Of a stretch of 64,000 nt of DNA, positions 292-57,962 are shown one piece after another. The stretch is from Hyphochytrium catenoides (Eukaryota > Protista > Hyphochytriomycota). Within the stretch, counting starts at the first letter, position 1, and every line of letters starts with the position of its first letter. The translations under genes and the position numbers were made by a program. The stretch spans positions 1 to 64,000 of the forward strand of contig FLMG01004242.1 in NCBI GenBank assembly GCA_900088475.1, given 5' to 3'. Under the pieces are notes generated by a model. That model worked only from the letters and a program-made list of their open reading frames with translations, had not been told where the DNA came from and ran no database searches.

Positions 292-3200
292 ATGCCTCCT
301 AAAAAGGATGCGAAGAAGGGCAAGGCTAAGGTAGTGCAAGGGTGTTGAGCGTCTCCTCCTTCAACTTCAATCCTCTCCTCTTCTTTCCTTTCTCAATGTC
401 TCCATGCTGCTTCAACCTCATCATATATCCCTATAACAATCCCGGCATATGTCCCCTGACTTGAGACTAGTCTCTCCTTCCCATCTGTCCATGCATTTCT
501 CTCTTCTGCTGGGGTGGGGTTCTTCTCGGTCCAACTTAAGCAAATCTTCTGTAGGCTTCGGCCGACGAGCCCAGTGGGGACTTTATCACCTCAGGTGGGC
601 GACCATTTACTCGCCGCTGTTATAGTCCATCCCTGTTCTTAACTAGTTGTTCCTGTCGCGGTCTGTCTGGGCCCATGGAATCCTTTTCTCTCTCCCCTGG
701 TCTTTCTCACATCTGTGTCCTCCGCTATTGTCTCCTCTCCCTGTTCTCTTCCTCTTACTTCCTCTCTCTACTCTCATTCCTTCTTCTCTCTCTCTCGCTT
801 TCTCTTTCCTGTGTGTGTGTATCTCTGATCTCTCCTGCCGGACTCGTTTCCATGCGTGTCTCTCTCTCTCTTCTCGTTTCTTTTTCCTCGTTCTTCACCT
901 TTCTTATCAACTTTGGCGGTCCCACCGTAGAGTATGATAACATGTCCGTGGAGATGCTGAGAGAAGTGGTGGAGATGCTGAGGCAGCAGCTGGAGAAGGC
1001 ACAGCTTGAACGGAACTACGTCCAGCTGGAGAGAGTAAGTGTATAACCTCGTCCCCTTTCGCCTTTCCAGACACCACTCTGCTACGACATCACGTTCTTC
1101 CTGAACCCTTCTCACTTCCGACCCGCCATATACAGCGAATGACTTGTCCTTTTGCCTCGAGGGAGCCTTCACATGTTCCCTCTCCCATAGAGAGCGCTCT
1201 CTCTTTTCTTATGTCCATGGTCTGATTAGAGGGTGCAACGTGAAATACTTTCCAATTACTCCGTGTCAGTAGCCTCCATTTCCTAGGTTCTGCATTGTTT
1301 GCTCTCTATTCCTTTATGTGCCTGGTATTTTAATGCAGTCTTCTCTTTACGTTCGTCGCCCCATCCTTGGTCTGCAGGATGCTGTGCAGACGTATTCAGA
1401 GATCACGCACAAGGAGGTAGAGGACATAAAGCAGCAGATTCTGCTGAAGGATCAAGAGATGGAACAGATCCTAGAGAATCACAAAGTAGAAGTTAAGGTG
1501 AGCTAGCGATAGACAGAAAGACTAGGTTTTCTCTCTCGTCCGTTCGCCTTGTTGCTCTTTGTGCTTTCTCCTGGTTGCCCGTTGTCTCTTTTACTTCTTT
1601 CCCCCTGTCATCATCATTTCCAATCATCACTGCTCTTTCACATGCAACCTGACTTCGTTTTGGTTTGGTGCCTCCGTTTAGCCTCAGTAACCTCGTACTT
1701 TTCCTTCCCCAATGGTCGTCAGGTGTACATCCAGAAAGTGAAGCACCTGGAGTATGAGCATAAGAACCGGTTGCAACAGCTGAAGGAGCAAAGTAATGGT
1801 GTGCTAGAGGATGAAAAGGACATCCACTCCAAGAGAGAACGCGATCTGAAGGTACAGAAGAGAGCACTCAAGGACGACCTCGCGGAGAGAAGGAAAGCCT
1901 ACGAAGAAGAGGTAAGCAGCTTTAGTTCTCTCTTTCTTACTCTCCGTCGGTTTCTTCAATCTCCTTGTCCCGTACGCGGTATTCTTCGACTTTCTTTTCT
2001 CGATGTATTTGCTTCCTTTGCGTCTTCTACCGTGCCTTTCCCTGATCAGCCGGTGTATACCGATGTTTGAGGCTCTGGGGCTTATGGTTCTTTTCGTTTG
2101 ATGAGTCGAATGCCATAAACCATGTGTGTGGATCGACTTTGCCTGCATGTGATCCTAGGGTGGGACTTGTACCCCTTGTCTGTGGAAGCTCATCAGCCCC
2201 TCTTCCTGCAATCTTTCCTCTGTTGCCGTAGATCACACAGCTGAAAGAGCTCCATGAGAAGAACATCTCAAAGCTTAGAGAAGAGTTTTCTCGATCTCTC
2301 TCTGCGATGCAAGACAAATGTGATAGCCGTCTCTCACAGCTACGAAGAGACCTTGAGCTAAGAGGGAAGGTAGACATCCACGAGATTGAAGAGAGGAAAA
2401 ATCTGCATATAAACGACCTAGTCAAGAACCACGAGGAAGCCTTCAAGCAGATAAAAACGTATTACAATGGGATCACGCATGACAATCTTAAGCTGATTAA
2501 GGCTCTCAAGGTAAGAAGGAACACTCAGGGAGCCGGAGTCAACTACATGTCAGCAGCGGAGAGAGAGAGAGCCAGGGAGAGAAGAAGAAACCCATGGAGG
2601 CAGACAGAGGGAAAGAAGGTTGATTAGAGATATCTGTGGGGCACAATATGTATTATACGTAGGTGTACTCGGTTCTTCTTATGCGGCTCTCGACCGTTTG
2701 TCCAACACGTTCCATTCCCTTCGGAGACATCCTGACGCGACCTGCCCAACATGCTTCTCGGCTCCTCTTCATTCTGCCTCTTTCCTATCATGTCTCTTCC
2801 CTTCCTGCAGGAGGAGATCTCCGACATGAAACGAAAGAAGACACAGAATGAGAAGCTCATGTATGAGATTGCTCTGGAGAACAAACGTCTCTCTGAGCCT
2901 CTGCAAGCTGCACTGGCCCAGGTGGAGCGCCTCAAGTACGAGCTGAAGGACGAAGTACGTACTTTCTCTATCTCTTCTCTTTCTTTCCCCATATCTTTTC
3001 TTGTGAAGTCCACCGCTCCTGCCCGCTAGCTGCTTCTTCTTTCTGTCCCGCATCACCTTCCCCGCAGACGGACTGACTCTAAGCGTTTGTTAACCACTTC
3101 CTTTGGCTTTATAGGAGAAGGATCGTCTTTGTCTTCGCAACGCCAAGGCTCGATATCAAGCGTTGGAAGAGAATCTCAGAAAGCTCAAAGGAGACCGCTT

Positions 3201-3908
3201 ACGATTAGAAGAAGCCTTTGCTGGGGTGGAGAGAGAGAGAGATGAGATGTATATGACGTTTGAGGAGACGATCAGGACAATCCAGCAGAAGACGGACTTC
3301 AAGAATCTCATTTTAGAGAGGAAGGTGGACCAGCAAATGGCTGACTTTGAAGCTAGAGATTCACAGATTAAGGAGGTACTATGCACCGATACTCTTCTCA
3401 TATCCCTCTTCTGTGGTTCGATAACTCTTCTTTACCTCTCTTCATATGTTCTCTGCAGGTATGCTTCTCTGTCCGTCGGCTCTTACTTTCTTCTGTGGGC
3501 GTCCTATAACGAGTCCCCTATGTATCGACCAAGACTGTCGTTCACCTCTCTAAAGAGATTTGGCCCCTTAGCATTATATCTCATCGTTCCTCTCAGCTAC
3601 TTCTGAAACATCCTTGGCGCTTTATGTGGCTCTGTTTCTTCTAGGTTCTGGCAACCGCGAATCTCGACCCCGTGGAGATGAACAAGATCTCTATGGAGCT
3701 GAAGACTATGATTGGAGAGCGGAACAAGCTAATTCGAGGCCTGCAGTACGAGGTCCTAAAGTCAGGGAAGGCCTTCAACGACACGCTGGGGACGTACAAG
3801 TCCAAGCTGATGAAGCTCGGCATCCCCGAGGAGGAGATAGATCAGCTTGGGTTCCGGCCTATAGCCATACAAGCAGGCGCAGGACCGGCCAACCTTGTCT
3901 CAGGATGA
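292..3908 (+). CDS. GAS8: Dynein regulatory complex subunit 4 (GAS8/trypanin), multi-exon
   Basis: Spliced exons read MPPKKDAKKGKAK...ERNYVQLER|DAVQTYSEIT...ENHKVEVK|VYIQKVKHLEYEHKN...IHEIEERKNLHINDLVKNHEEAFKQIKTYYNGITHDNLKLIKALK...ENKRLSEPL...IQQKTDFKNLILERK...KLGIPEEEIDQLGFRP. These are typical GAS8/DRC4 motifs, joined by GT-AG introns. Confidence 0.95.
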
Positions 3909-4224
3909 AAGAAAGAGTATACTATGGGTCATAAAAAGAATCAGAAGTCTAATCAATGGGTCATGCTGAAGCGAACTAACAGCGCAGAGAGGAGAATATG
4001 AAGTCCATCGGCTGTCATCGTCGTGTCTGATGAATTGTTTGGCTATACGCTGGAGCTTCTCACGCTAACTCACCTGCCCTCGTCGCGCAGTGCTCTAATA
4101 TTATCAATGGGGGAAGGGGAGTAAAACATCAGTAAAATGGGGAGGAAGAGCAGCCTGTGTGGCCGTTTGCGGCTACCTCCGTAACGGACCATATGTGAAG
4201 ATGCGACAGAAGCAAGCAAGCGCT

Positions 4225-4297: not shown

Positions 4298-4306
4298 CTC
4301 TCTATC

Positions 4307-4368
<62 letters not shown>

Positions 4369-4410
4369 CTCTCTCTTTCTCTCTCTTTCCGCTCTCTCTT
4401 TCTCTCTCCT
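4225..4410. repeat. Compound (CT)n/(CTAT)n/(CTTT)n microsatellite
   Basis: Directly visible upstream of the EutBC start codon. Confidence 0.95.
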
Positions 4411-4703
4411 CAGATTCTGATCAATCTCTGGCTCAATAGTCCTGTCTCCGCTTAATCTCCTGACGTGCTTCTCGTCGCTTTTCTCTTGCTTCTTTCCGAA
4501 CGTCCAGTTTCAGTTCCCAAGCATATGATACCGCACGCTAGTAGTGACGTACTCTGTAGCAAAGGACGGAACCGCAAGAGAGTAAGCTACTCTCTCTGTC
4601 TCTCTGTCCGTCACTTTGAGTTATTGAGACTTCAGATAGCCGGGGGGCAAGAGTTCTTGCTTTACACTCTCTCTGACACTTGATCTGACCCTTGTGAAGC
4701 AGT

Positions 4704-7700
4704 ATGGCGCAACCTCTCACTCCTGAAGCCGCCCGCAAGCTCTTCGGGTATGCAAATGACTTCAAGGAAGGTGATGCTACCATACACGTTGCAGCCCCTA
4801 CAGACGGGGAGAGAGAGAAAGCCCGGGCTCTTCTCTCTTCACTTCGGCTTGGGGACATCAAGAGTGAAGATTTTGTTGAGGATGAAGTGACCATGCTCTC
4901 TAAGAAGGGCCTGGATGACGAGGCTCATCGACGCACCCTTGGTTGGACGGTTGGAGAGCTAAGAGCCTTTCTCCTTCGTGCGCCTGAAGAAGAGATCAAG
5001 GCTGTTGCTGCTGGGCTGACGAGTGAGGTCATTGCTGCTGTGTGCAAGCTCATGACCAACGCAGGTGAGCGAGCAGGGAGAGAAATGAAGTCAGAGAGAG
5101 TATGGATCTTGTGATGGAACCCCACATACAAAGTTAGGATGAAAGAGACAGAAGCGAGAGACGAGAGAGTGAGAGAAAGAAAGAGAATGACCGGGAAAGA
5201 GAGGGATTTAAAGGACAGAGAGAGAAAGAGTAGATAGACAGAGCGAGGAAGAGCGAGAGAGACAGAAAGAGAGCGGAGAAAGAAGGAAAGGGGGAGAGAG
5301 GAGAACAGAGCACAAACGAGTGGCGGTCAACGCGAACTAATAGAGATGAAGGAATGAGAAACTAGGACGGACAAAGGGAAGAGCGTCACATGAGATGTAC
5401 TAGAGAGGAGAGAGAAATCCAGGAGAGAGAAAACCGTGGAAACCCATTGAGCCGCAGGCACACTACTTATCGGTTCTCCTAACAACAGAGCTCAAGACCG
5501 TCTCAAGCAAGATCTACAATCCACTCCCCAATTCGACTGTGGGTGCCAAGGGCTACTTTGGCTCCAGGCTGCAGCCCAACAGTCCCACTGATGGTTAGTG
5601 AAGTCAAGAGAACTAAAAGAGCTAAAGAGAAGTCGGAAAGAGAGAAATAGAGCGAGCGAGAGGACAAGCGAGAGAGAGAGAGACAGGAAGAGAGACAGAA
5701 GAGAGATCGGGGAGGACAAGAGCGAGAGAGAGCGAGAGAGCAAGGGAGACAGTGAGAGAGAAAGAAAGAGAGAGAGGACGTTGAGAAGCCAATCGTGCAA
5801 TCTCTCGCCTTAGTTCAGCGCATTTATCAGTTTCCCTTCGTGTTCTGTCTGTTCCTTAACTACTTTAGAGACTCGTATAGTTATCCTCTTTCTCTCAGCT
5901 GTGATTAAGCCTAATCTTGCGGCCCTTTTGCAGACCCTGAAGAGATACTGTTCGCCACACTAGAAGGCCTTTCATACGGCTGTGGAGACGTGATCCTGGG
6001 CATTAACCCTGTGGCCAGTGATCACCCTAGCGTCACAGCCCTAGAGAAGTGTATGAGGAGGGTCTGGGAAGCCTTCAAGCTGCAGGACAAGACGACCTAC
6101 TGCGTGCTGGTAAGATTAAGGCACATTGTCATACTTCTCTCTACGTTATTCTTCACTGCTCAAGTTCTGGCTTGGGCCTGAGCTTAGCCCGTAACATCGC
6201 GTGTGAACGACCTTTCCGTCTCTTTCCAGGCGCACATTGACGATCAGGCAGCTGTTGATGATGGACAAGGACTTGTGCAATGCCTCTTCCAGAGTATNNN
6301 NNNNNNNNNNNNNNNNNNNNNNNNNNNNNNNNNNNNNNNNNNNNNNNNNNNNNNNNNNNNNNNNNNNNNNNNNNNNNNNNNNNNNNNNNNNNNNNNNCGA
6401 GCATACGGTCTGGCTCGAGCGCTAAAGAAAATGACAGGTTAGGAAAAAAGCAGCAAGGAGGATGATGAGAAAGAGAGAGAGATGAGACGGTTGACCGTGA
6501 AAGTCCCTCTTAATGTGCTCGCAAGAGATTCTCTCTCTCTCTCTTCTCCTTATCTTGGCACATGCAAAGCACTTCCCTGATGTTGTTGGCCTCTGGGTGT
6601 TCCATTCCTGGTTAAGTAACTGTCTTTCTCCTTCCTTCTGCTCCCTCTTCCATCAACTAGGGTCTTGGACCATTGTCAACGATGTAGCGGGATTCATTGG
6701 CCCAGAGGTTTTCCGCTCTCCTGCTCAGCTGACCCGCGCTTGTTTGGAAGATCTGTTCATGGGCAAACTACACGGACTAACAATGGGACTGGATATTTGT
6801 TCCACGTACCACATGGGCGTATCAATAGAGGAGATTGAAAGAGTGCAGGAGGAGGTGATGGAGGCCGGTACGGCTTATTATATGGCTGTTCCAGGACGAA
6901 ACGACCCGATGCTAAGCTATATCACGACGGGCTTTAGAGACCATCCACGGCTGAGGAAAAAGTTTGGAAGGCAAGTGTCGAAGGAGATGAAGAGCTTCTT
7001 TGAGGAGGTTGGGATCATGACTGGCGATGGGGAACTCACGCAGAATGTAAGAAAAATGATGGGAGTACCTCTTCTCGGTGTCTACTTCTAGATTGGCACG
7101 GATTGTTCCTTCAGTGAGGCTATTATATGAGGCTCTATAGCTTGGCTTCGTTCATATCCCCGCCATCACATCTCTTTACGGCGTGCCTGTCATAGGTTCT
7201 GGATCTGCATCTATGGAGCTCATGGCCACTGACCATTTCTTAGACTTACTGCTATTCGCTCTAACCTTGTTGCATACATTATTGCTTCCTTCCAATCTTC
7301 TGATTCCTTTATGATGGATCAGGGAGGAAACACAGCCTATATGTACATGAAGTTAAGACAGGCTGAAGGAGACTCCAGACCTCCTGCTCTTCTTATTGAA
7401 GAGGCAGACAGGACGCTCAAGAAACTCCAAGCCCGAGGTCTAGATCTAGGCTATGGCCACGATGGCACCTACGGAATGCCGTCTCACATTGAAGAGAAGC
7501 TTTTCAAGCTATATAACAACGCCAAAGAGGTCATTTACCTCTCCCTTTCGGAGGGCTTTGAAGAGGTGAGAATGAGAGCTTTAGGTGGTTCATATTTACT
7601 CTCATCACGATTCTCTCAACTTATCTAGCCTAGCTGCCTTCGTTATCTGTCCTATCTGCCTTGATCTCTTTGCTAAAGGCAGACCCTCAATAGTCATTTC

Positions 7701-8915
7701 CCTGCTGTGTCAGCTTTCCCTGTTTTCTCGCACTCTTACCCCCTACACGGCGCCACAACTTCCTACTTCAGTGCCGCAGGAAGCCACTGGTGGTCTCTAC
7801 CGTTGCGACAAACAGGGAAGAGTACGTACTTCGACCGGTCTCGGGAGAGCAGCTTAGCAATCCTTCTATTCTGTCTCTAAAAAGATTCAGAGTAGAAGAG
7901 ATCGAAGCCAATCACTGCAACGCGGTCATTATCTTCAGTGACGGTCTCAACGCTCACTCCCTAGAGAGGCCCGACCAGGTAAGGTCCATCTTGGTTTATC
8001 TCTCGTCGGCCCTAGAGTCAGGATAATCCTGCTCGCTATAATCGTGCGATATAATGCTCTACTTTGTTCTTGCTATTGGATGCTATTCAAATGCTCCTGC
8101 GTCCACTTACCTGCTCTTCCCCTTTCTATTACTTTCTTCTTCCTTGGCCCGCAACGCTTACCCTAGGTGTCGGAACTCGTGAAAGTGTTGGAGGCAGGCT
8201 GCGCAGAGAGAGGTCTGAAGCTAGCGAGGGAGATCGTGTTGAGAAATGGAAGAGTCCGCGCTGGCTACGCAATCGGTAAGGTAACAGGAGAACAAGAAGA
8301 TAGATCAGAGCAATGCATACGGAGCGACCTAGAGCCATCTTGCATCTACTGCAAATGAGGGCCATTGATGATCCTGGGAGGTAGAGAGAAGGGGAGGGAT
8401 GAAAACAGAAGGAATCTAAAAGGACAACAAGGGTTAGAGACAAGCTTGGGAGAGCCTCTACTTTTGAACAAGGAGAACCTTAGAGCAAAACCGAGGTTTC
8501 TCATTGCGCTCGATTAATAGGCCAGCTACTCTTTGGAGGCGCCCCACTGACGACGAAGTATGGCAGCGCCGGAGAAGAGAAGAAAAGAGAAGAGGTGAAG
8601 GAGCGGGCTACCGTCTTTCATATCATCGGAGAGAGGCCGGGCAATGGTAACAACACGTATTCTGTCTACATCTCGTCTGTGGACCGAAAAGCCTGGGAGC
8701 TCGGCATCACGCACGACGTGGTCAAGGTAGTCTGCGGGATATCCTATAGTGCGTTGCACCCCAAGCGGGCCGGAGCTGACTGTCTAGATGTGGTGGATGA
8801 GCTACTCAAGAGGCCTTCTTCACGTCATCTCCCAACCCCTCCTCAGCTGACGCCGTCTACCTCAAAGCGGAGCGTCACTTGGAGCAAGAGCTGCAGTTCC
8901 AAGAGTCTCACCTAA
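4704..8915 (+). CDS. eutBC: Ethanolamine ammonia-lyase, fused large (EutB) and small (EutC) subunits; at least 8 introns; interrupted by an assembly gap
   Basis: Exons approx. 4704-5064, 5489-5593, 5934-6109, 6230-(gap)-6437, 6661-7046, 7323-7565, 7772-7978, 8167-8280, 8526-8915. EutB motifs: ANDFKEGD, GLTSEVIAAVCKLM, SRLQPNSPTD, EGLSYGCGDVILGINP, CVLAHI, LFQS, VNDVAGFIGPE, LEDLFMGKLHGLTMGLDIC, NDPMLSY. EutC motifs: REEYVLRPVSG, IIFSDGLNAHS, NGRVRAG, IIGERPG, YSVYI. Confidence 0.92.
6298..6397. other. Assembly gap (100 N) inside the EutB coding region
   Basis: Run of N. The conserved EutB YFETGQG segment is expected to fall here. Confidence 0.99.
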
Positions 8916-9583
8916 GCCGTATTCTTCCAATTACTGTGCGAGTTGCCTCGACAACCCCTTCACTAGATAGGATAGAGCTTAGGGCAGCCGAGCAGCGACT
9001 GGTGTCATGAAGGCCAGATATATACGACCTGTAAAGCAGAGTAATGAAGAGGATAAATATACCTCTCGCTCAATGATCTCCAATAGGAAGTTAGCCACCA
9101 AACGCCCAAAGCCTTTCCCTTGTACATCATGATAGTGCAATGCAGGTCGGAAGTAGCCCAATATCAAGGCTCGTGATAGACGCCGGGCACCAAGTCATCC
9201 CGGCAATCCAGATGAATAAACTGGTATGGTGGTAGAATGTTGCCACACCGCAGGCTCAACGTACAGAGGATCGGCGGGAGCAGCTGCCGTCCAAATCATA
9301 ATAAACCAAGGGGGAGCGGACAGAGAGATTTTGTGAAGCAGTTTAGAGTAGGTGCGGTGCTTTCTGCGCAGAAAGAAGGAGTGGTAGAATCTTACCCTAC
9401 GTGCAGCTGCATGAATGGGAACTACATGGCTTGGCTTGTAGGGTCAGAAAACTACTGGTCGATTCTGAAGGCAGCAAGAAAGATTGTATGATGATGCAAC
9501 AATACTTGGGCCTTTCATTAATGTTGGACATGAGGTTATTATCGCCTTGCTGGGCCTCTCAGAATGGCCTTTGCGGTGATTAA

Positions 9584-10675
9584 TCAGCAGCAGGCTCCGC
9601 TCGATGTTGCCGGGAGCGGCATGCTCGACTTACTGTCATCGCAAGGGAAGAGGCCAAAGTGCTTAGAACGGTCGCCACTTACGGTGAAGTGATCCTTGAG
9701 ATATGTCTCTGAAAGCATGCTAGCGGTATTGCCACAGACTAGAAGAGGCTTATGAGCCTCAAAGCTGTGCTTCTCATCAAGGACGTAAAGTTGCTCATGA
9801 CCGCGAATTGTTCCCTTGTAGACCGCGACTTGACCATAGTCTTCACAGGTGGTCTCCAAGGTATCAAGTTTAAAAAGCCTGAAAGTCATTGAGTAGAAGG
9901 TCACGGCCGGCCCTACAAGCTGACTCAGCTCCTCGTCGATAATGTCAATAGGCGTACAAGATACCCGGCGAGGGTCGGTGAACCCAACTTGATGACATAG
10001 TCGATAGAAGTCTTGCACGTACAGAGCACCCCCAAGACATTCCCCAAGCATAACTTCATGACTTTTGAGCTCCTCTGAAAGCCGCCTGGATGCAAAACAG
10101 TCAGAGAAGAAGAACTCTCCTCCCGGCTTCAGGAGGTCGTACACTCCTTTCAGCACGAGGTCTTTTCGAGGCGACAGGTTGAGCACACAATTGGAGATAC
10201 AAAGATCAATAGTTTCTGCTTCCAGGCCAGTCTGAGAGAGAAACTCGATAAGTCCTTTCTGAAAACTGAGGTTTGGCTCCCAGCCTAGGTTAGCAGCGAA
10301 GGCCTTGATACTTTGCCTTGCTGTAAGGAGCTGTTCATCGGTCATATCGACGCCAATCACCTTGCCCTTCGGACCCACAAGCGCTGCGGCTACATAACAA
10401 TCTTGACCCGATCCTGAGCCTAGGTCGAGAACTGTGAGCCCTTCAATGCCGCCAGGTAAGACGGAGCCGCAACCATAGTACTTGGCCTTCACCTCCTTCG
10501 GAACGAGCTGAAGAAGTTCAAGGATCTGTCTGGTTGGTTTAGTCTTGTTGGTGCATGCACTCGTCTTCAGATCGCTGGTTGAGCTCAACACTCGTCCGTA
10601 GTACTTTTGGACTGCTTCGTGCTGCTGATCCGATGTTGCATCTTCCTGGATAGAGCCGCCTTTTTGCTCGACCAT
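9584..10675 (-). CDS. arsM: Arsenite S-adenosylmethionine methyltransferase (ArsM/AS3MT), 363 aa, no intron in the CDS
   Basis: VQKYYG..LKTSAC, YYGCG, LDLGSGSGQDCY (SAM-binding motif I), GVDMTDEQL, ISNCVLNL, LKPGGEFFFSD, GECLGGALY, FRLFKL, CEDYGQVAVYKGTI, VCGNTA, HFGLF and a C-terminal CC. The As-binding cysteines typical of the family are present. Confidence 0.96.
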   Translation of the reverse strand: MVEQKGGSIQEDATSDQQHEAVQKYYGRVLSSTSDLKTSACTNKTKPTRQILELLQLVPKEVKAKYYGCGSVLPGGIEGLTVLDLGSGSGQDCYVAAALVGPKGKVIGVDMTDEQLLTARQSIKAFAANLGWEPNLSFQKGLIEFLSQTGLEAETIDLCISNCVLNLSPRKDLVLKGVYDLLKPGGEFFFSDCFASRRLSEELKSHEVMLGECLGGALYVQDFYRLCHQVGFTDPRRVSCTPIDIIDEELSQLVGPAVTFYSMTFRLFKLDTLETTCEDYGQVAVYKGTIRGHEQLYVLDEKHSFEAHKPLLVCGNTASMLSETYLKDHFTVSGDRSKHFGLFPCDDSKSSMPLPATSSGACC

Positions 10676-11510: not shown

Positions 11511-11913
11511 TGGTGGTCGCCTGTTGCAGCAGGAACTTACTCCCTGACGAGTGTAGGTGGTAGCAAATAGAAGTACTAAGGCGGTTCCTCGTCGGAAGCA
11601 GGCAGCACGAGGTCCTTCTCGCGCAGGTGGCGAGTGGAAGAGGTCCAATCGCTATGACGGCGAAGAATGCTAAAGATAAGAGCAAGCTTTGACGCGACGG
11701 TGATCTAGGAAAGATCCTCTCGCTGAGACGACAACAGCATCAGGCACACAGCTTGAAGCCTCTTCCTCCACCTTGAAGGGAGAGTGGTGTGGGCAGGAGC
11801 CGGAAAAAGTGGAGCTGAGGATTGCCTGGAAAAGATTTATTTGACTGCGAAAGGCTAATAAAGGGCAAAAGCTAGGACTGCTTCCTACTCTGAATACACC
11901 CGACTTGTTAACG

Positions 11914-13597
11914 ATGTCCAGCCTCAGCTTGCGGCTCGCTGTCCTACGAGGAGGTGGTTACTACGCCCCTGCCTCTGTGCCGCTGCCAACAATGCTGTCC
12001 ATGAGTTGTGCGACAAGGAATAGCCATCCCCGTCTCGGCTGGGGGCAACCTCTTCGCCCACTGTCCACAGCCACAACCCTCGCCTCCACAGAGCTTCAAG
12101 CAAAGCGTGAAGAGAGAAAGCAAAGACGGCGCTCTCTTGAGCAGCACACTAACAATATTCCGCCGTTCAAGGACTTTCTAATGCAAAGCCACGCCTCATT
12201 GACGCGGCGAGCTACTGAGGTTTTTCAGATGAACATCGGACTCTATTGCAACCAAACGTGCAGTCACTGCCATGTGGAGGCCTCACCACAGAGAAAGGAG
12301 ATGATGAACAGGGCTGTGGCGGAAAAATGCTTGGACATAATCTCCAACAGTAAGACCGTTAAAACCCTTGACATCACAGGGGGAGCGCCAGAGCTCAACT
12401 CGCAGTTTCACTTTCTGGTTACTGAGGGAAGGAAAATGGGACTGGAGGTGATCGACCGATGCAACCTCACAGTACTCTTCGAAGAAGGTCAAGAGGTACG
12501 TGCATGAGAGAGCTTTCAATGTTCCACACTCGTTCTCCTCCTGTTCACGCCTCAGATTGTTAATGAATGCCTTCCTTCGCCTTGTTGTCTCTTCCTCACC
12601 ACCTCAGAACCTCAAAGATTTTCTTGCTGAGAACGGCGTCCGAATTGTGGCCTCGCTGCCTTGTTATTCGTCGGAGAACGTGGATAAGCAGCGAGGGAAA
12701 GGTGTTTTTGATAAAAGCATCAAGGCATTGCAGCTATTGAATAGCTACGGGTGGGTGTCGGCGGCTAGAAGTGGTTAAAAGGATGTTGGTCCGTAGGCCT
12801 ACACTGGGCTAACGCTCGCCCCTGATCGTCCGCAGCTACGGGAAGGCAAACACTGGGCTCATCCTCGACCTTGTTTACAATCCAGGAGGAGCTTTTCTAC
12901 CTGGCAACCAAGAGTCGCTAGAGCAGCAGTATAAGGTAATAATATTGCTTTGAGAATCTATGGGAGGGGGGGAGGAGAGAGAGGGAGGCTCCGAGACTCT
13001 AACAACACCCCTGCCTGTCTTCTTGATTTTTTGATCCTCATTAGAGCTTCCTGCAAAGTCATTTTGGCATTGAGTTCAACACATTGTTCACCCTGGCCAA
13101 CATGCCTATCAAGAGGTTCGCGGACTATCTTCGGCGAAGAAACGAGCTGAGCTCCTATATGAAGCTCCTGGCGGAGAGTTTTAATCCAGCCACGGTGCCT
13201 CACCTGATGTGCACCAACTACGTTAGCGTGCGATGGTGAGTTCTTGTCGCTTGTGTTTCTCGCTATTGTGAACCATAACAACACGGCGATAATAACGTGT
13301 TCGATTGAAGGGACGGGTCTGTGTATGACTGTGACTTCAACCAGCAGCTTGATTTGCCAGTGATGGCCAACTCTAGCACAAGAAGACCACTCAGCGTGTT
13401 TGATGTATGCTGTACGGATGACATCCTTGAGCAGAAAATCAGAGTCGCCTCACATTGTCTGGGGTAGGTGTGGCTTTTCATTTACCGTTGAATGGCGACT
13501 CACTTCTTCCTTTGCCTTTGGTCTTTCTCTTATCAGATGCACTGCCGGGAGTGGGTCTAGTTGCCAGGGGGCAGCTGTGAAGCAGGCTGCCATCTGA
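11914..13597 (+). CDS. arsS: Arsenosugar biosynthesis radical SAM protein ArsS, 6 exons
   Basis: Exons 11914-12495, 12608-12750, 12836-12935, 13045-13235, 13311-13463, 13537-13597. Motifs: QMNIGLYCNQTCSHCHVEASP (CxxxCxxC), LDITGGAPELN, IDRCNLTVL, VASLPCY, NVDKQRGKGVF, LDLVYNPGGAFLP, FGIEFNTL..NMPIKRF, LMCTNYVSVRWDGSVYDCDFNQQL, HCLGCTAGSGSSCQG. Confidence 0.95.
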
Positions 13598-14991: not shown

Positions 14992-15031
14992 NNNNNNNNN
15001 NNNNNNNNNNNNNNNNNNNNNNNNNNNNNNN
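14992..15031. other. Assembly gap (40 N)
   Basis: Run of N. Confidence 0.99.
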
Positions 15032-32885: not shown

Positions 32886-35808
32886 CTATCGAAGCTTTCT
32901 GCTCTTGACCACTGTGGCCTTGATACCTGAGGTCTCTCCTCCGTATCTCGAGGCCTCTCCCGTCCGGACCTCCCGCACTTGTCCTTTTCTTCTGATCTCT
33001 GCCTTTTTGAACTGCACTCTCTTCTTCTTCCTCGGATTCCGGTTGAGCTTGTTCTTGTGAGGCGTGAGGCCCCTGTTTGACAAGATCTGATAGTTGATTC
33101 CTCTCTTCTCCCCGTCTCCGATATCATCCTGAAGGTTGAAGGACGTCTGCAGAGTGCGTGTGTACTGTTCCTTCTTCTTCTCCTTGAGTTCCTTCTTACT
33201 GTCCAAAACAGAAGAGAGAAACTGCTCAGCTTCTTCTATCTCGTCACTTCTCACGCCAGGTATGGAAGAGCTCTTCTTTCTCTTAGCCTCTTTCTTCTCT
33301 GTCTTTCTCTTCTTCTTCCCTGGACCAATGTCGTCCCCTTCATTCAGGCCGAAGAAGTCATCCAGCTCATCATCGAAAAAGTCATCTTCATCGGCTTCCG
33401 CATCGTTCTGCATATTTTGGAGGATACTCTCCATCTTCGCTTTGCTCTTGGCGTCTCCTTTCCCATATTCCTTCCGCACTCTCTTCTTCTTCTCTATGTT
33501 GCTGATGGTTTCCTGCAGGACAGTCGAAGTTACTCGCTTCTTCCTTCTGGCTTCTCTCTCTTCTTCCTCATCCTGATCGTTGTCTTCCTCTTCAGCAACC
33601 TCAGGGTCGAAATCTTTGACCTTCTTAGCCTGAGATTTCTTCTTGGTAGGAAGATTCATAAATTTGTCTTCATGTTCTTGGTCTCCCTCGCTGTCTTCCT
33701 CTCTTTCCATTTCCCCGTCTTCTCCCTCCTCCGCTGGGTCTAAGTCCGCCACGCTAGACTCGTCGGTATCCTAACATACCCATCAGGTGCAGGAAAGTAC
33801 ATTGAGAAGAGTTCGTCTTGTTAATGAGCCCGGAAGGAGCAGAGCAAAGAAAGCAATCAACGCATTCCTTACCTCATCTTCCATCTCCTCTTCATGTGGC
33901 TCCTTCATTACTATTGCTGAGCGGTGCGCTTGAGCTTCTTTCCCGTCACTGCTCTCTTCTGTGTCATCGCTCTTCTCCAGATCCTCTTGAAAAGCTTTTC
34001 TGGAAGCTAATATCCTCTTTTCGAACGGTCGGAGGAGTGGAGTAAGCTTCTCTAACTGCATGCGTAGCTGCAAACATACCGAGACAGATGTTAGTAAAGG
34101 ACTAGAAAGCAATCTAGAGCATCAGGTCGATGGATAGCGAGACGCACAGAGAGAGCTCTATAGAGAGGCGGTGGACTGCGTCGAGTGAGAAGTGAGAATG
34201 TGGGAGATTGGCTGGATCTCCATAGTCGACCTCCAAATTGAGAAGCATCAGGAGAATCAAGGTGCTAACCTGAAGGATTCTTTCTATGACGGGATGCGTC
34301 CTGGTCTCAGTGCCCTAAGGCGAGAGAGGGAGAGAGAGTGTCAACCGGAGTGTTTTTAGACGAGAGAGTTACTTTCTCTGTTGCCCTCTCGTCCTTCGTT
34401 CTTCTTGCTATTTTCTCTCATTCTACTCCGGTAACTCCTATCCTCTCTCATTCGACCTCGGTAAGGCCTCTTATTATCTGTACCTGGACTTTAGCATAAA
34501 GGTAGAAGAGGATGTTAGCAGAGTAGCCTAAGAGTAGATGGTCCTTCAGCTGGAAGAGAGAAAGGACATCGCCGTGTAGACGTTCCGCCGCGGCAGCCTC
34601 TAATGAAGGCTGAAGTCCTGTGCGCTCTTCTCTCCAGCTCCTCTTTAGCTCTTCCAGAAGCCCAAGGAGTTCTGGGTTTTCTCTAAACGAGATTTCGAGG
34701 ACAAGAAAGAGGTAAAGTCAGATCCATCTCCTGACTCAAATTCGTCCAGTGGCTATTGCCTACCGTGCCAGAAGCTCTAGCTTCTCCTTCTTAGAGAGCT
34801 TAGAGAGGTCTCTTTCTACCCGCTCTACTTGGATGTCCTCTTCCTCATCTCCAACGCCGACGTCATTAAGGTCCACTACATCCTCCTCTCCTAATAAAGC
34901 GGCCTTCTTGCTTCTTCTACTGTCTTCCTTCTTATTCTTCTTCTCTTTGCCATCACCATCCAGCTGAGACATCGCACCGTCCTCAAAGAAGTCAGTCGCG
35001 TCGAGGTCCAAGAGCTGCTTTTTCTGGAGCTCGATCGCCTCTTCTTCCTCCTCTCTCGCCTCATCTTCATCGATATCTACACCTACTACGTCTGTGTCAT
35101 AGTACATTCTCTTCCTCTTGCCCCATTTAGATGAGAGTTGGTCAATCTTTTGTCTCTCCTCTTCATAGTCACTTTCTTCCTCTTCGTCTCTGACCACCTG
35201 GCCCTTTACGCGGACAGGGGCGTGCCCAGGAATGAAGTCATCGTGCTCTTCCTGGTCTTCCTCCTCATCTTCCTCATCCTCGTCTGGTGTCAGTAGGAGA
35301 AAGGTGATGAAGTCAGCCAGTGCCGTGGCAAGAGCAAGCAAGTCATGTCGCACCAGGGGCAAGCGAGTAGATGGCAAAGAAGAAAGGAAACCAAAGGAGA
35401 CGCACCAAAGAAGCGGGCGAGGAAGAGAGAGAGAGGCTATGAAAGAGCCAAAGCCCTGCCCATACTTCCCCTCTCTCACAACTTTGATACCAAGCAAGAA
35501 GGAAAATTGAGAGGAAGAGAGCAACAGATATGGCAAGTAACCTTACCGCTATCCTCTTCATCGACGTCCAGGTCCATCACCGCTTCCTCCTCATCTCCAT
35601 CCTCCTCACTATCTGCTCCGCCGTTGGACTCATCTCCGAACCTGACTTTGTCTCTCTTCATGATAAACTGATCAACCTCGTCGTACATGTCGTCTCCTTC
35701 ATCTTCGTCTCTGCCTTTCGACTTGCTCTCCTGTTGTCTTCTCCTCTCCATCATTCGCCTCATCCCCTGCCCTTCTCCGGTCTTCGCTGACCCTCGTCTC
35801 TTGCCCAT
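32886..35808 (-). CDS. SAS10: SSU processome component Sas10/Utp3, multi-exon
   Basis: Acidic N-terminus (YDEVDQF, WGKRKRMYY, EEEEAIELQ), central ENPELLGLL...THPVIERIL, and the Sas10 C-terminal domain KRGINYQILSNRGLTPHKNKLNRNPRKKKR...YGGETSGIKATVVKSRKL. Confidence 0.95.
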
Positions 35809-36569: not shown

Positions 36570-36736
36570 GAGAGAGAGAATCAGAGTGAGCGAGCGAGAG
36601 AGGGGAGAGAGAGAGAGGGGAGAGAGAGCGAGAGAGAGAAGAAGAGCGAGAGCGAGAGAGTGAGAGACTGAGAGAGAGAGAGAGCGAGAGCNNNNNNNNN
36701 NNNNNNNNNNNNNNNNNNNNNNNNNNNNNNNAGAGC

Positions 36737-46683: not shown

Positions 46684-47004
46684 ATGGTAAGGAAGTGACG
46701 GTGAGCCTTATCGGTTGAAGGGTTAAAGGACTGACGAACAAGTGCAGGCAAAAGGCGCATCATCTAGTCAGGCAGGACAGGCAGGTCGGGGAGCTGCTGC
46801 TGCACCCACTTCAGGACCTGCCGCAGCAGCTGCCGCTGGTANNNNNNNNNNNNNNNNNNNNNNNNNNNNNNNNNNNNNNNNCTAAAATTCTATACGGATG
46901 ATGCTCCTGGGCTAAAGATTGGGCCTAACACGGTCCTTGTCACAAGCTTGGTGTTCATCGCCTTTGTCGTGCTTCTACACGTTCTTGGCAAACTCCAGAA
47001 GTAA
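46684..47004 (+). CDS. SEC61B: Protein transport protein Sec61 subunit beta; first coding exon is ATG only; 40-N gap at 46842-46881
   Basis: ATG|gtaagg...cag|[10 protein letters not shown]... then [40 protein letters not shown], the Sec61beta signature. Not listed in the ORF track. Confidence 0.93.
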
Positions 47005-48313: not shown

Positions 48314-51015
48314 ATGCAGAAAAGAAGCCAATTTGTGACTACGTTTCACGTCAAGCACCAACGACCAGTCCACTCAGAACAGGAAGAAGGGGACGAAAGC
48401 AGAGAGCGCAAGAAGCTAAAGACAACCTCTACAGCCGAAAAGTTCTCCGCGCACTTTATAGAGACGTCTACTCCGGCTCACATTCGTCGATATGCCTCCC
48501 ATTGGAGAGCCTGCACAGTTTGGAATGCTGAGGAGCTTTCGAGCCTGGCAGTTTTCAGCCATTACAGATTCCATCGTAAGCCTTAGAGCACTGTGTTTGC
48601 CTGGCATTGTGAGTTATGGACCCTTCGCTTCTGCCTGAGCGACAGGTCCAAAAACAAGTTTCTATGGCCCGTGGCTGCCCTTCTGCACTGGTCCCCACTC
48701 GTGTCATTTCTGTGATGCCTGCTGTGGGCGCGTAACCGACTTAGCTACCCTTGTACTCTCGGACATATACTCTTGGATCTTCATCGCTGACCTCAACTAT
48801 CGCGTCCACCTCATCTTTATTTTTCCGTATCTGTCCATGGCTGTTCTTAGTCCATCTCACGCCGTCCTCTTTCTCTTTCCCTTTCTATATAAAGCTATTG
48901 ATTGTCTCCCTCTTTCTTTTCTTGATTCCTCTTGCTCTGTTTGTCTGTCGTTGACTGCCCTTCTCAACCTCTTCGTAGGAGTAGAAGTTAGCAGTAAGTC
49001 CAAGCATGAGAAAGTTTTCTTTGGGGATATTTTGAAGAAGTCTGTTGTGCGGTTCGGCTTCGGACATTTTCTAAGTATCTTCGATGCTCAGAATAAAGGG
49101 CAACTCCACTGGGCCTCGGACCTAGATTTAGACTTTTACCTCTGCCAGTGCTCGCTCTTCTCTGCTGAAGAGGAAGGAGGGCAAAGGGCTGCCTATTTGC
49201 CAAATTTGATGGCAGATATTGAAATGTCAGTTTGCTGCTTTAGGTGCTCAGCTCAGCTTTTCTTGCAATTGCACTGATTCCTTATTCCCAAGAATTTCAT
49301 GAGCGTCGAGAAGCGTGCAGTTCTTGACGACTTCTAGAGCTAATAGACCCTTCGCCTTTCTGGCCCTATGATGTATGTTGCTTCTAGAAAAGGAATAGCC
49401 CTTCTGCCTGCATTGATCTCTCTTTTTTGGACGTTGACGTGAATGTGTTTTACTCTATCAACTTTTTCCTTAACTAGGATATCTCTTGCCTTTCTTTAAT
49501 TTATCAGTCCCAAGGAACTTCTTGGAGACCGCAAGCTTCTTCAGGTTAATCTCTGGATGAATCCAGCCCCAAGCAGGTCTAACCTTCACTATGACGCTTA
49601 CAACAACCTCCTCACTGTGCTCCGGGGTAAAAAGACGGTGCGGCTGCATCCGCCATCGGAGACGGCTAACCTCTACGCCTTCCCTGTGTACTCGAAATCT
49701 TGCAACCATAGCGGCGTAGATGCATGGGGCACCGAGGAGGAAAGGCTTGCCCATTGCCCTCGTTTTACCCCATCTAGGTCTTTAGTCTGTGAGGTGTTAC
49801 CTGGCGGTCAGTCGTTTCTCTCAATTAACAGTAGCATGTTAGCCCCAGGACATTACCAGACAGCCCCTACGCCTGACAATATCGTCTTCTCTTTTCGTTA
49901 TCACATTTCTCTCTATTTCGTGTCCCTCGGACGTCCTTTCCTCTCTCTCTGTCTTTCTCCCTCACTTTTTGTGCTTCTCTGCGTTCCGACTAATAGCTCT
50001 GTAACTGCTTTCCATGAGTCTCAGCCTTTTCTGCCAGCTTACAGCTCTAACCCTTGCCATCACAGATATTCTTTTTATTCCGGAAGGTTGGTGGCATCAG
50101 GTAACAACGATCACCTACAGCAGCTGATCTTCCACTCCATTTTGTCCCTCTTCAGCACTAAGAGTCCTCTAGGTGGATTCTGATGAGTGCACGATAGCGG
50201 TCAACTTCTGGTTTGAAGGCTTGCGTCATAAGGTCGCCGCGCCAAAGATTTCTCCATATATTCTAAGAGCGGTCATGGAAAGTACTATCAACAAGAAGAA
50301 GCAAGAGGAGATCCAAGGGGCAACGGCGAACGCGAAGGCTAAATGTTCGTAGCATCACGGTTCTGTGCCCTTCTTCTGAGAGTGCCTAACGCTCAACTCT
50401 GTCTCGATCTCGCGATGCCGCGATCCGTACCTGTCACTCTTCCTGGGAACGCAGTTGCAGCCATGGGGAGGTTGTCAAGGTGTGTCTCGGTTCATCGCTA
50501 TTGAGTAACTATTCTGTATCAGCTTTTGTCATGGACCAAGTGATTGGTAAATCCTATATTAGCTTCTTATCTTGCCTTCTCGACACTTCTTTTTAGAGGC
50601 TGAGCCTGATTACATGCGGTGTATCCGTAGAGAGGACGTCCTCGAGCATATGGATAAAATTCTTACACCGAAGCAATGGCCAGAGATCCTTCTTGCTCTT
50701 CCCTTCAGAGAGCACGTGGCTGTCCTCTTAAGACTAGCTTCGAGCTGTCCTGACAGGCTAAGAGAAATGTTTGCTGATTGGACTCCTCTCTTTGCTGAGG
50801 CACTCTCCGAGATGTGGGAACAAAACGAGAGCTCCAGTTCCCTCCAGGACGAAATGACAGTGACGAACCCCTCAGGGAAAGACTTCCTTGAACGGATTTT
50901 CGGCATCTACAGCGAAGAGGAGCAGAGTGGGATACACCGCGCAGTGGTACAGAAACGAGAGGCATTCATGAAGGAAATAGCTCAAAAGGTCCTGAAAGAA
51001 GTGCTCGGACTTTGA
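48314..51015 (+). CDS. JmjC/cupin-8 family 2-oxoglutarate Fe(II) oxygenase, multi-exon
   Basis: TPAHIRRYASHWRACTVW, FYLCQCSL, VNLWMN...SNLHYDAYNNLLTVLRGKKTVRLHPP (HxD), PGDILFIPEGWWHQVDS...IAVNFWF (distal His), plus a helical C-terminal extension. Confidence 0.9.
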
Positions 51016-56627: not shown

Positions 56628-57962
56628 ATGGCTCTTCCACGTGGTGGTTCGATGGAGGGCACTATGCAGTCAGAAACCAATGCCCAAGTAGTTGAATTTC
56701 GGCATCGTTGGAAGATAACCAACTTTGCCTGGCTCGACAGTGAGCCTTCCACAGCTACGAGGAGTCCGCCGTTCCGTAGTGCCGGTAAGCAGTAGCGCTT
56801 TATCAGTTGATGCCAGGCTTCTCTGGGCTGCTGCTCTTGTTGGTCCTTCATGGCACTGCGTGTCACCGTCTTCATTGCTAACCTAATAACTGTCCTCGGG
56901 CCCCTCCTTCCCTTCTCTACAGGCCATGAATGGCAGCTACATGTTTATCCCAATGGAATGCGGGCGGAAGACAAGGGCTTCGTCGGCATCTTTTTGGCCA
57001 GCGTGTCCTGTCATGAACACGATGGCTTACGTGCACGTTTCAAGTCCACAATTCTTAATAAGTGTCCGGAGCTGAACTTCGAGAGAGAGGACAAGCTTAT
57101 CAAGTGTTATGGTATGCCTTTGAAGAATTGGCTCCTCATCTGTAGCCAAAAGAGTTAACCTCCCTACTTCCGATTTACAGGAACTTGGGGTTGGAATCGC
57201 TTTGTTGATCGCGAGCGGTTGCTTAAGACGGAAAATGGCTATGTAACCAACGACACCGTGACTATTGAGGTGGTGGTCTGGGTACGGTCGGGCATCGTTT
57301 CCACAACCCACCCCATAGAAACACCCCTTTTGGTTATAAGTCCGCCGACAATTGCAGCGGAAATGGGAGAGCTACTTCGCTCTGCTGATCACAGTGACAT
57401 GACCATCAGTTGCGCGGGAGAGGAGATCCCGGTCCATAAGTGCATTTTGGCATTGCGATCCAAGGTTTTCCGGGCTATGCTGACTCACAACATGCAAGAA
57501 AATAGGGACAATACGCTGATTATATCAGACACAGATCCAGATGTCCTGAAGGAGCTTGTCAGCTTCATCTACACAGATGAGTGCAGCCCTGAAGTGGTGG
57601 AAAAGTGTGGGGTGGAGCTGATGAAGATGGCAGACAAATATGAGTTGGCCAGACTTCGTACCATTTGCGAGCATCACCTCAGCAAGAGCCTTACAGTTGA
57701 AAATGTGGTCGACAGGCTTACACAGGCGGATATGTGTCAAGCGGCAGGGCTGAAGGCAAAGTGCGTGGCGTTTTTATGCTCAAATTTGGCTGAAGTCTCG
57801 GACACAGAACAGTATAAGAATCTTTGCCAGATGCGGCCAGACCTATTGGTTGACGTAGTCGACTACCAGGCACAAAGGGCCATACAAACATCTACAGTAG
57901 CACCCAATCAGACCACCCAACGGAAGCGGAGACGGGCTGAATCGGGTCAGCCGAGTAGTTGA
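56628..57962 (+). CDS. MATH-BTB (SPOP/BPM-like) Cullin3 substrate adaptor, 3 exons
   Basis: MATH: HRWKITNF..SPPF, WQLHVYPNG..GFVGIFL, WGWNRFV. BTB: SDMTISCAGEEIPVHKCILALRSKVFRAML..FIYTD..ADKYELARLRTICE. Basic tail QRKRRR. Confidence 0.93.

Follow-up and report, generated by a model that had tools for sequence, protein, structure and literature searches.

The 64,000-nucleotide stretch of the Hyphochytrium catenoides assembly examined here (contig FLMG01004242.1; "the window" throughout, meaning this whole stretch) carries on its plus strand, at positions 4704-8915, a spliced gene in which a region matching the ethanolamine ammonia-lyase (EAL) subunit EutB is followed by one matching EutC. We consider it probable, with a chance of roughly 75% and on the basis of sequence comparison, that this is a genuine stramenopile nuclear gene for a single-chain EutB-EutC EAL dependent on adenosylcobalamin (AdoCbl). 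The EAL family and its chemistry are textbook knowledge. What is new here is the stramenopile EutBC, the fused form being common in soil bacteria and eukaryotic copies being already present in databases.

Three-frame translation of positions 4600-9000, combined with inspection of splice sites, yielded visible exons that together make up 695 codons without a stop, colinear with EutB and then EutC. The 8 visible introns (424, 340, 120, 223, 276, 206, 188, and 245 nt) are all of the GT..AG type with GTRAG-type donors, and alignment to fused relatives showed that the register with the homologues is regained at every exon junction, with no insertion or deletion. An assembly gap divides the gene into a left portion of 236 codons plus 2 bases and a right portion of 459 codons, the latter beginning at the base directly after the gap and ending at the stop. 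The preliminary description of this DNA had proposed that EutB and EutC motifs join in one frame over at least 8 GT-AG introns, and that the junction between them is free of gaps. Both proposals hold, since the spliced frame across the 8 visible introns is stop-free and the EutB-EutC junction (7046-7772) contains no N. The parts of the gene are listed below; Pfam and NCBIfam scans were made exon by exon, and E. coli EutB numbering comes from pairwise alignment of the translated pieces with EutB from NC_000913.3.

4704..5064, plus strand: exon 1, EutB N-terminal part starting at ATG 4704 (120 codons + 1 nt; Pfam EutB 2.7e-25, profile 7-120), aligning from E. coli EutB residue 18; GT donor at 5065.
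5489..5593, plus strand: exon 2, with RLQPN equivalent to E. coli R160/Q162 (Pfam EutB 2.3e-4, profile 125-157), bounded by an AG acceptor and a GT donor.
5934..6109, plus strand: exon 3, with GINPV equivalent to N193 (Pfam EutB 1.4e-11, profile 160-214).
6230..6297, plus strand: left visible part of exon 4, in frame with exons 1-3 and ending in CLFQS + AT at the gap (E. coli S247).
6298..6397, no strand: assembly gap of 100 N, a nominal length, covering, by comparison with relatives, ~53-54 EutB codons that should include YFETGQG and the catalytic Glu (E. coli E287).
6398..6437, plus strand: right visible part of exon 4, RAYGLARALKKMTG, phase 0 from 6398 with the frame open to the stop, aligning from E. 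coli R310.
6661..7046, plus strand: exon 5, EutB C-terminal third, with MGLDIC equivalent to D362 and MLSYITT to Y404 (Pfam EutB 2.1e-46, profile 310-434).
7323..7565, plus strand: exon 6, joining EutB to the EutC core, with the motif LQxRGLDLGYGHDG; colinear with all fused relatives, and without a Pfam match when scanned alone.
7772..7978, plus strand: exon 7, EutC core with SDGLNA (Pfam EutC 5.8e-7, profile 62-117); 7772 is the sole frame-keeping acceptor.
8167..8275, plus strand: exon 8, EutC with GRVRAGY, retaining the family-invariant R, V, R, G, and Y; 8275 is the sole frame-keeping donor.
8521..8915, plus strand: exon 9, EutC C-terminal part with IGERPGNG, retaining the invariant G, E, R, P, G, S, Y, W, and H, followed by a low-complexity tail and TAA at 8913-8915 (Pfam EutC 6e-6, profile 161-229).

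Alternative splice sites at 7780 and 8280 were rejected because both break the frame. (CTAT)n and (CT)n microsatellites occur upstream of the start codon (among the tracts at window positions 4300-4410, 5080-5440, and 5600-5790), and introns 1 and 2 are filled with long GA-rich low-complexity tracts, the translation of which would give spurious Arg/Glu-rich open reading frames (ORFs).

The EutB domain (PF06751 / NF011649) is matched over profile positions 7-214 and 310-434 at 1e-4 to 1e-46, while positions 215-237 are colinear in alignments and ~238-295 fall within the run of N. Among solved structures, exon 5 matches the EAL heavy chains from Listeria and E. coli (PDB 2qez/3abo) at 6e-24 and 8.5e-21. 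The EutC domain (PF05985) is present as well: exons 7 and 9 score 29.5 and 26.2 bits against a Pfam cut-off of 25.8, and BLASTP aligns the window protein with residues 121-244 of E. coli EutC at 1e-7. All five visible substrate-binding residues (R160, Q162, N193, D362, and Y404 in E. coli numbering) are identical in the window protein, in agreement with the earlier proposal that their equivalents are to be found in RLQPN, GINP, GLDIC, and MLSY. More generally, the window protein retains 111 of 114 visible columns with at least 90% conservation across 47 family members, and 64 of the 66 visible invariant columns of a 37-member alignment. Given the register at the junctions and this retention of residues, the pattern is not the one expected of motifs that line up by chance or of a pseudogene in decay.

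The sequence on either side of the gap supports the scaffold join, as the flanks carry adjoining stretches of one gene and share its orientation. On the left, the visible sequence ends in FQS (E. coli 245-247) and AT, the beginning of an Ile or Met codon at a position occupied by Ile or Leu in E. coli and the fused relatives; on the right, it resumes in phase 0 at RAYG, corresponding to RNYG from R310 of E. coli. Between these flanks lie 53-54 residues in the fused relatives and 62 in E. coli, and the true gap should therefore be at least ~160 nt (~160-163 nt), for which 100 N is too short. Runs of 100 N are inserted by convention and do not record a measured length, and no weight attaches to the fact that the nominal gap keeps the frame (2 + 100 = 102, divisible by three). 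The two visible parts of exon 4 (6230-6297 and 6398-6437) probably belong to one exon, which would measure ~270 nt if the gap is intron-free, an ordinary size for this gene. No copy of the missing EutB segment was found elsewhere in the window by tblastn of relatives, and an exact 35-mer of the left flank had no match in metagenome contigs. Three more assembly gaps, of 40 N each, are present in the window at 14992-15031, 36692-36731, and 46842-46881.

Several observations weigh against an intact, active enzyme. Eight family-invariant residues of the 37-member alignment fall in the gap, namely the catalytic Glu of Y-x-E-T-G-Q-G and seven others, and a lesion or deletion there is possible; were the true gap ~100 nt long, it would imply the loss of ~20 residues. 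In the visible sequence, substitutions occur at two invariant positions (L to M and P to T), and a Gly kept in at least 90% of family members is replaced by His. Furthermore, splicing and expression are predicted from the DNA, neither an EutA-type reactivase nor a eut partner was seen among the 30 unspliced ORFs of the window that were scanned, and no biochemically characterised fused EutBC was found in the literature searched. The gene may, accordingly, be pictured as an inactive relic that was transferred, acquired introns, and then died through a deletion, stop, or frameshift that removed the active-site loop. Such an account can point to a gap that covers exactly the YFETGQG region, to a nominal gap length ~60 nt short of what the homologues require, and to the predictive nature of the expression claim. 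However, a relic should be reconciled with nine exons whose 695 visible codons are free of stops, with the near-complete set of visible invariant residues, and with codon use that has ameliorated, while the placeholder length of the gap takes the force out of the apparent shortfall. We consider this alternative unlikely.

The single-chain architecture has clear precedents in bacteria. A scan of one genome per prokaryotic species returned 51 loci with EutB-EutC homologues, and in nearly all of them the match lies within a single ORF (~700-730 residues) whose alignment with the window protein extends over both halves, the EutC part included. These loci are spread over Acidobacteriota (Vicinamibacterales, Blastocatellia, and Pyrinomonadaceae), Gemmatimonadales, Binatia, Planctomycetota, and deltaproteobacterial metagenome-assembled genomes. 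The full-length sequences closest to the window protein form a group (P0172-P0177) with 52-55.5% identity overall and 69% over exon 5. For database sequences such as these, gene spacing, GC content, and the domains encoded nearby served as the guide to origin. In this group the GC content of the contigs is 67-70%, and both of the layouts inspected (L057 and L062) consist of tightly packed, intronless genes, so that the group is probably bacterial. ESM Atlas look-alikes of exon 5 were confined to generic bacterial EutB clusters.

Across exons 5-9 the spliced frame of the window gene is uninterrupted by stops and contains the LQxRGLDLGxG segment, and the protein aligns end to end with the ~700-aa bacterial single ORFs and with fungal proteins. 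It differs from the bacterial fused chains by a short insertion within the EutC part and by a C-terminal tail rich in Ser, Thr, and Pro. The bacterial single-chain proteins (~700-780 aa, from Acidobacteriota, Gemmatimonadota, Myxococcota, Planctomycetota, and the high-GC soil group; P0172-P0177 and L002-L052) are colinear with it over the full length and share the joining segment LQxRGLDLGYG; their genes are intronless and 56-70% GC, whereas the window gene is spliced. By these alignments the fusion is not a eukaryotic invention, as the same ~700-aa single chain is available ready-made in bacteria.

Among 10 neighbours of 7 bacterial loci, no recurring partner of the fused gene (EutA, shell protein, permease, or aldehyde dehydrogenase) was found, and the bacterial EutBC looks like a stand-alone gene. 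The absence of recurring partners makes the fused enzyme a one-gene module, which suits transfer. The neighbours recorded at these loci (L004, L006, L010, L013, L019, L020, and L036) include a GDSL lipase, a SnoaL-like protein, a histidine kinase, and a fusion of a major facilitator superfamily protein with spermidine synthase.

For a view of the fold, an AlphaFold model was made of P0172, the closest full-length relative, and not of the window protein itself (predicted local distance difference test score, pLDDT, 93.4; predicted template modelling score, pTM, 0.91). The P0172 model superposes on the E. coli EAL alpha chain (3abo_A) with a template modelling (TM) score of 0.89 and a root-mean-square deviation of 1.9 Å over 443 columns, while its ~243 C-terminal residues match the beta chain (3abo_B/D) with a TM score of 0.74-0.78 over ~240 columns. 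The fit to diol or glycerol dehydratase is far poorer (TM 0.50). Since the model superposes on both chains, the single chain would rebuild the alpha-beta protomer and, as modelled, the exon 6 segment is the counterpart of the helical N-terminal portion of the beta subunit rather than a loose linker.

Compared with the two-subunit EutB/EutC enzymes of E. coli, Salmonella, and Listeria (PDB 3ABO and 2QEZ; EC 4.3.1.7), the window protein has the same two domains in the same order and keeps E. coli EutB R160, Q162, N193, D362, and Y404 as well as, from the beta subunit, the GERPG and RVR motifs. In contrast to those enzymes, which are encoded by two genes, it is a single polypeptide, with an identity of 34-39% over EutB and 27% over EutC. 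The internal join takes the place of the EutC N-terminal region, which is the site of the encapsulation peptide in microcompartment eut systems; the window fusion has no such targeting segment, nor is it accompanied, among the window ORFs scanned, by shell genes, EutA, or a eut operon, and the gene is nuclear and spliced.

The distance from the characterised enzymes leaves room for an enzyme that is active with AdoCbl but has another main substrate or another role, for instance by acting on other vicinal amino alcohols such as 2-amino-1-propanol or by serving in detoxification instead of nutrition. The fused family as a whole is 34-39% identical to the characterised two-subunit enzymes, its bacterial genes stand alone without eut partners, and E. 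coli EAL itself accepts 2-amino-1-propanol (title of PDB 5ysr). Nevertheless, every visible ethanolamine-contacting residue is the one found in E. coli, and the P0172 fold is close to EAL and distant from the diol and glycerol dehydratases. A different main substrate is, in our estimation, distinctly unlikely.

The window gene is not the only eukaryotic member of the family. An exhaustive profile search with exon 5, cluster look-ups, and a word search seeded with the best match revealed single-chain homologues in public databases from the fungi Blastocladiella emersonii (KAI9183326.1), B. britannica, Catenaria anguillulae, three Allomyces species, Sorochytrium milnesiophthora, and Gonapodya prolifera, and, outside the fungi, from Andalucia godoyi (ANDGO_00096), Paratrimastix pyriformis (KAJ4458855.1), and Anaeramoeba flamelloides (KAJ3445225.1). 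Several of these are labelled "ethanolamine ammonia-lyase heavy chain" or "EutB-domain-containing protein". Predicted EAL is, by this comparison, not unique to this organism.

The fungal genes contain 2 introns in Blastocladiella emersonii (L059), 2 in Allomyces macrogynus (L061), and 7 in Gonapodya prolifera (L060), with one intron position common to Blastocladiella and Allomyces, and they are flanked by TAP42/actin in Blastocladiella and by EB1/MCM2 in Allomyces; they are genuinely nuclear. None of the 8 intron positions in the window gene coincides with those of Blastocladiella, Allomyces, or Gonapodya, so that common descent from an ancestor that already had introns finds no support in the intron positions. 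The zoosporic-fungal proteins (including Allomyces AMAG_03000) resemble the window protein in being eukaryotic, spliced, single-chain, and placed in the same half of the tree; they differ in their 45-50% identity to it, in 45-75 extra N-terminal residues, and in that the window host is a stramenopile. The Andalucia, Paratrimastix, and Anaeramoeba proteins, annotated as single-chain EAL, are 34-38% identical and fall in the other half.

Two sets of metagenomic or unassigned sequences belong beside these homologues. The partial sequence most similar to the window protein (P0003, JGI metagenome 3300059473; 57% over 436 columns) lies on a contig with a 529-aa EutB ORF followed, 265 nt on, by a separate 238-aa EutC ORF, an arrangement that would fit an intron in an uncultured eukaryote. 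On each of four Logan contigs of ~3.4 kb (L053-L056, from SRR28981369, SRR28981378, SRR28981380, and SRR28981381), the sole ORF is the same 778-aa EutBC (P0002). These contigs resemble transcripts from an organism of the fungal-type clade, which suggests that EutBC is expressed there.

A maximum-likelihood tree (48 rows, 718 columns, LG+C20 with posterior mean site frequencies, PMSF) shows two halves of the fused EutBC family, separated with 100/100 support. One of them contains Andalucia, Anaeramoeba, and Paratrimastix along with Myxococcota, Acidobacteriota, Planctomycetota, and Ensifer. The half that contains the window protein is an unresolved four-way split between the window protein alone, an Acidobacteriota-type bacterial clade (100/100), the high-GC bacterial group with a small further group, and the zoosporic fungi with partly eukaryote-like sequences. 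Forcing all named eukaryotes into one clade costs 430 log-likelihood units and is rejected by the approximately unbiased (AU) test (p-AU 1e-44), with a group that was defined post hoc and a margin that is very large. At least two transfers into eukaryotes would follow from this rejection. Joining the window protein to the fungal clade, on the other hand, costs 0.5 units and is not rejected (p-AU 0.43). The stramenopile copy may thus either share its origin with the fungal copy or come separately from bacteria like the high-GC soil group, a choice that the tree cannot decide.

Horizontal transfer fits a family that is otherwise bacterial and patchy in eukaryotes, and the properties of the gene indicate that it has settled in its host. 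Its GC content at third codon positions is 0.585, against 0.47-0.60 in other ORFs of the window, and in synonymous codon use the gene and those ORFs are correlated (r = 0.81). The introns are 46.5% GC and carry GA/CT microsatellites as does the surrounding DNA. These features, together with the introns themselves and the eukaryotic neighbours, mark a domesticated nuclear gene, in keeping with the earlier suggestion of a domesticated horizontal transfer. Other features of the window are as follows.

2307-3931, plus strand: GAS8/DRC4 (nexin-dynein regulatory complex subunit), spliced, just upstream of the EAL gene; three ORF pieces match PF13851.
9584-10675, minus strand: arsM-like S-adenosylmethionine (SAM) methyltransferase, intronless (Methyltransf_31 8e-29), tail-to-tail with the EAL gene.
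11905-12507, plus strand: radical-SAM ORF, beyond the arsM-like gene.
32886-33752, minus strand: Sas10/Utp3, exon-sized ORF.
49557-50183, plus strand: JmjC/Cupin_8 protein, exon-sized ORF.
57219-57962, plus strand: BTB-BACK (SPOP-like) protein, exon-sized ORF.
59751-61925, minus strand: dynein heavy chain, C-terminal region, exon-sized ORF.

The Sas10, JmjC/cupin, BTB/SPOP, and dynein ORFs are ordinary eukaryotic gene content, and the GAS8/DRC4 gene upstream indicates a flagellated host. The best matches of the Sas10 ORF are to oomycetes (Phytophthora, Aphanomyces, and Achlya; ~50% identity), then to brown algae and other ochrophytes; by protein similarity, the host belongs to the stramenopiles and is related to oomycetes. 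Because the family is mainly bacterial and an assembly gap lies within the gene, one might suspect bacterial contamination or a chimeric scaffold formed at the gap, but eight spliceosomal introns with host-type microsatellites, gap flanks that continue one another in the same orientation, and eukaryotic genes on both sides of the EAL gene on the same contig refute contamination and leave a chimera highly improbable.

Pfam scans of the 30 unspliced ORFs of the window found no bacterial microcompartment shell protein (EutK/L/M/N/S) and no EutA, in line with the preliminary description, which had seen no such genes nearby. It had also noted that there is no obvious targeting peptide. The window protein indeed begins ten residues ahead of the conserved core, like the bacterial proteins, with no extension, and the simplest reading is that it is probably cytosolic, although a further 5' exon is possible.

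Taken as an intact EAL, the gene would have arisen when a ready-fused bacterial gene was acquired horizontally and then gained spliceosomal introns of its own. In its product, AdoCbl would sit between the TIM barrel of EutB and the EutC-like domain. Homolytic cleavage of the Co-C bond would lead to abstraction of hydrogen from C1 of ethanolamine, followed by migration of the amino group (a radical 1,2-amino shift) and release of acetaldehyde and ammonia. Given corrinoid uptake and adenosylation, the organism could in this way obtain nitrogen, and C2 units via an aldehyde dehydrogenase, from ethanolamine derived from phosphatidylethanolamine.

The preliminary description treated EAL as a prokaryotic enzyme that is absent from lists of eukaryotic B12 enzymes. 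As an account of the literature this is accurate: a comparative survey of 2009 knew only MetH, methylmalonyl-CoA mutase (MCM), and class II ribonucleotide reductase (RNR II) in eukaryotes (PMC2667541), the table of a 2020 review enters EAL for prokaryotes only (PMC7435645), and a paper on cobalamin use in early-diverging fungi makes no mention of it (PMC8085122). The Andalucia and Preaxostyla genome papers likewise leave EAL unmentioned, papers on Hyphochytrium and on horizontal gene transfer in osmotrophs do not discuss a eukaryotic EAL, and no discussion of eukaryotic EAL, whether in Blastocladiomycota, stramenopiles, metamonads, or others, was found in the literature searched, which left out most subscription journals. 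As a statement about the organisms it does not stand, in view of the annotated copies in zoosporic fungi, Andalucia, Paratrimastix, and Anaeramoeba. Eukaryotic EAL appears, therefore, to be under-reported, with copies that are already deposited under automatically assigned names.

A wider proposal may be put forward, for which we see the chances as evenly balanced: that EAL is an overlooked fourth family of eukaryotic B12 enzymes, taken up at least twice in ready-fused form and present as an active, intron-bearing nuclear gene in this stramenopile, zoosporic fungi, a jakobid, and metamonads, and that here it acts together with an unusually rich set of corrinoid-handling genes, enabling B12-dependent use of ethanolamine nitrogen and carbon. 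If the gene does encode an intact, domesticated EAL, a fourth enzyme would join the eukaryotic B12 list, and osmotrophic and zoosporic microbes would have a new reason for B12 dependence. It would also provide a clean case of a one-gene bacterial pathway module that needs no gene for a partner subunit and has entered eukaryotes repeatedly. Finally, the fused EAL is, as a single polypeptide, a simple subject for biochemistry.

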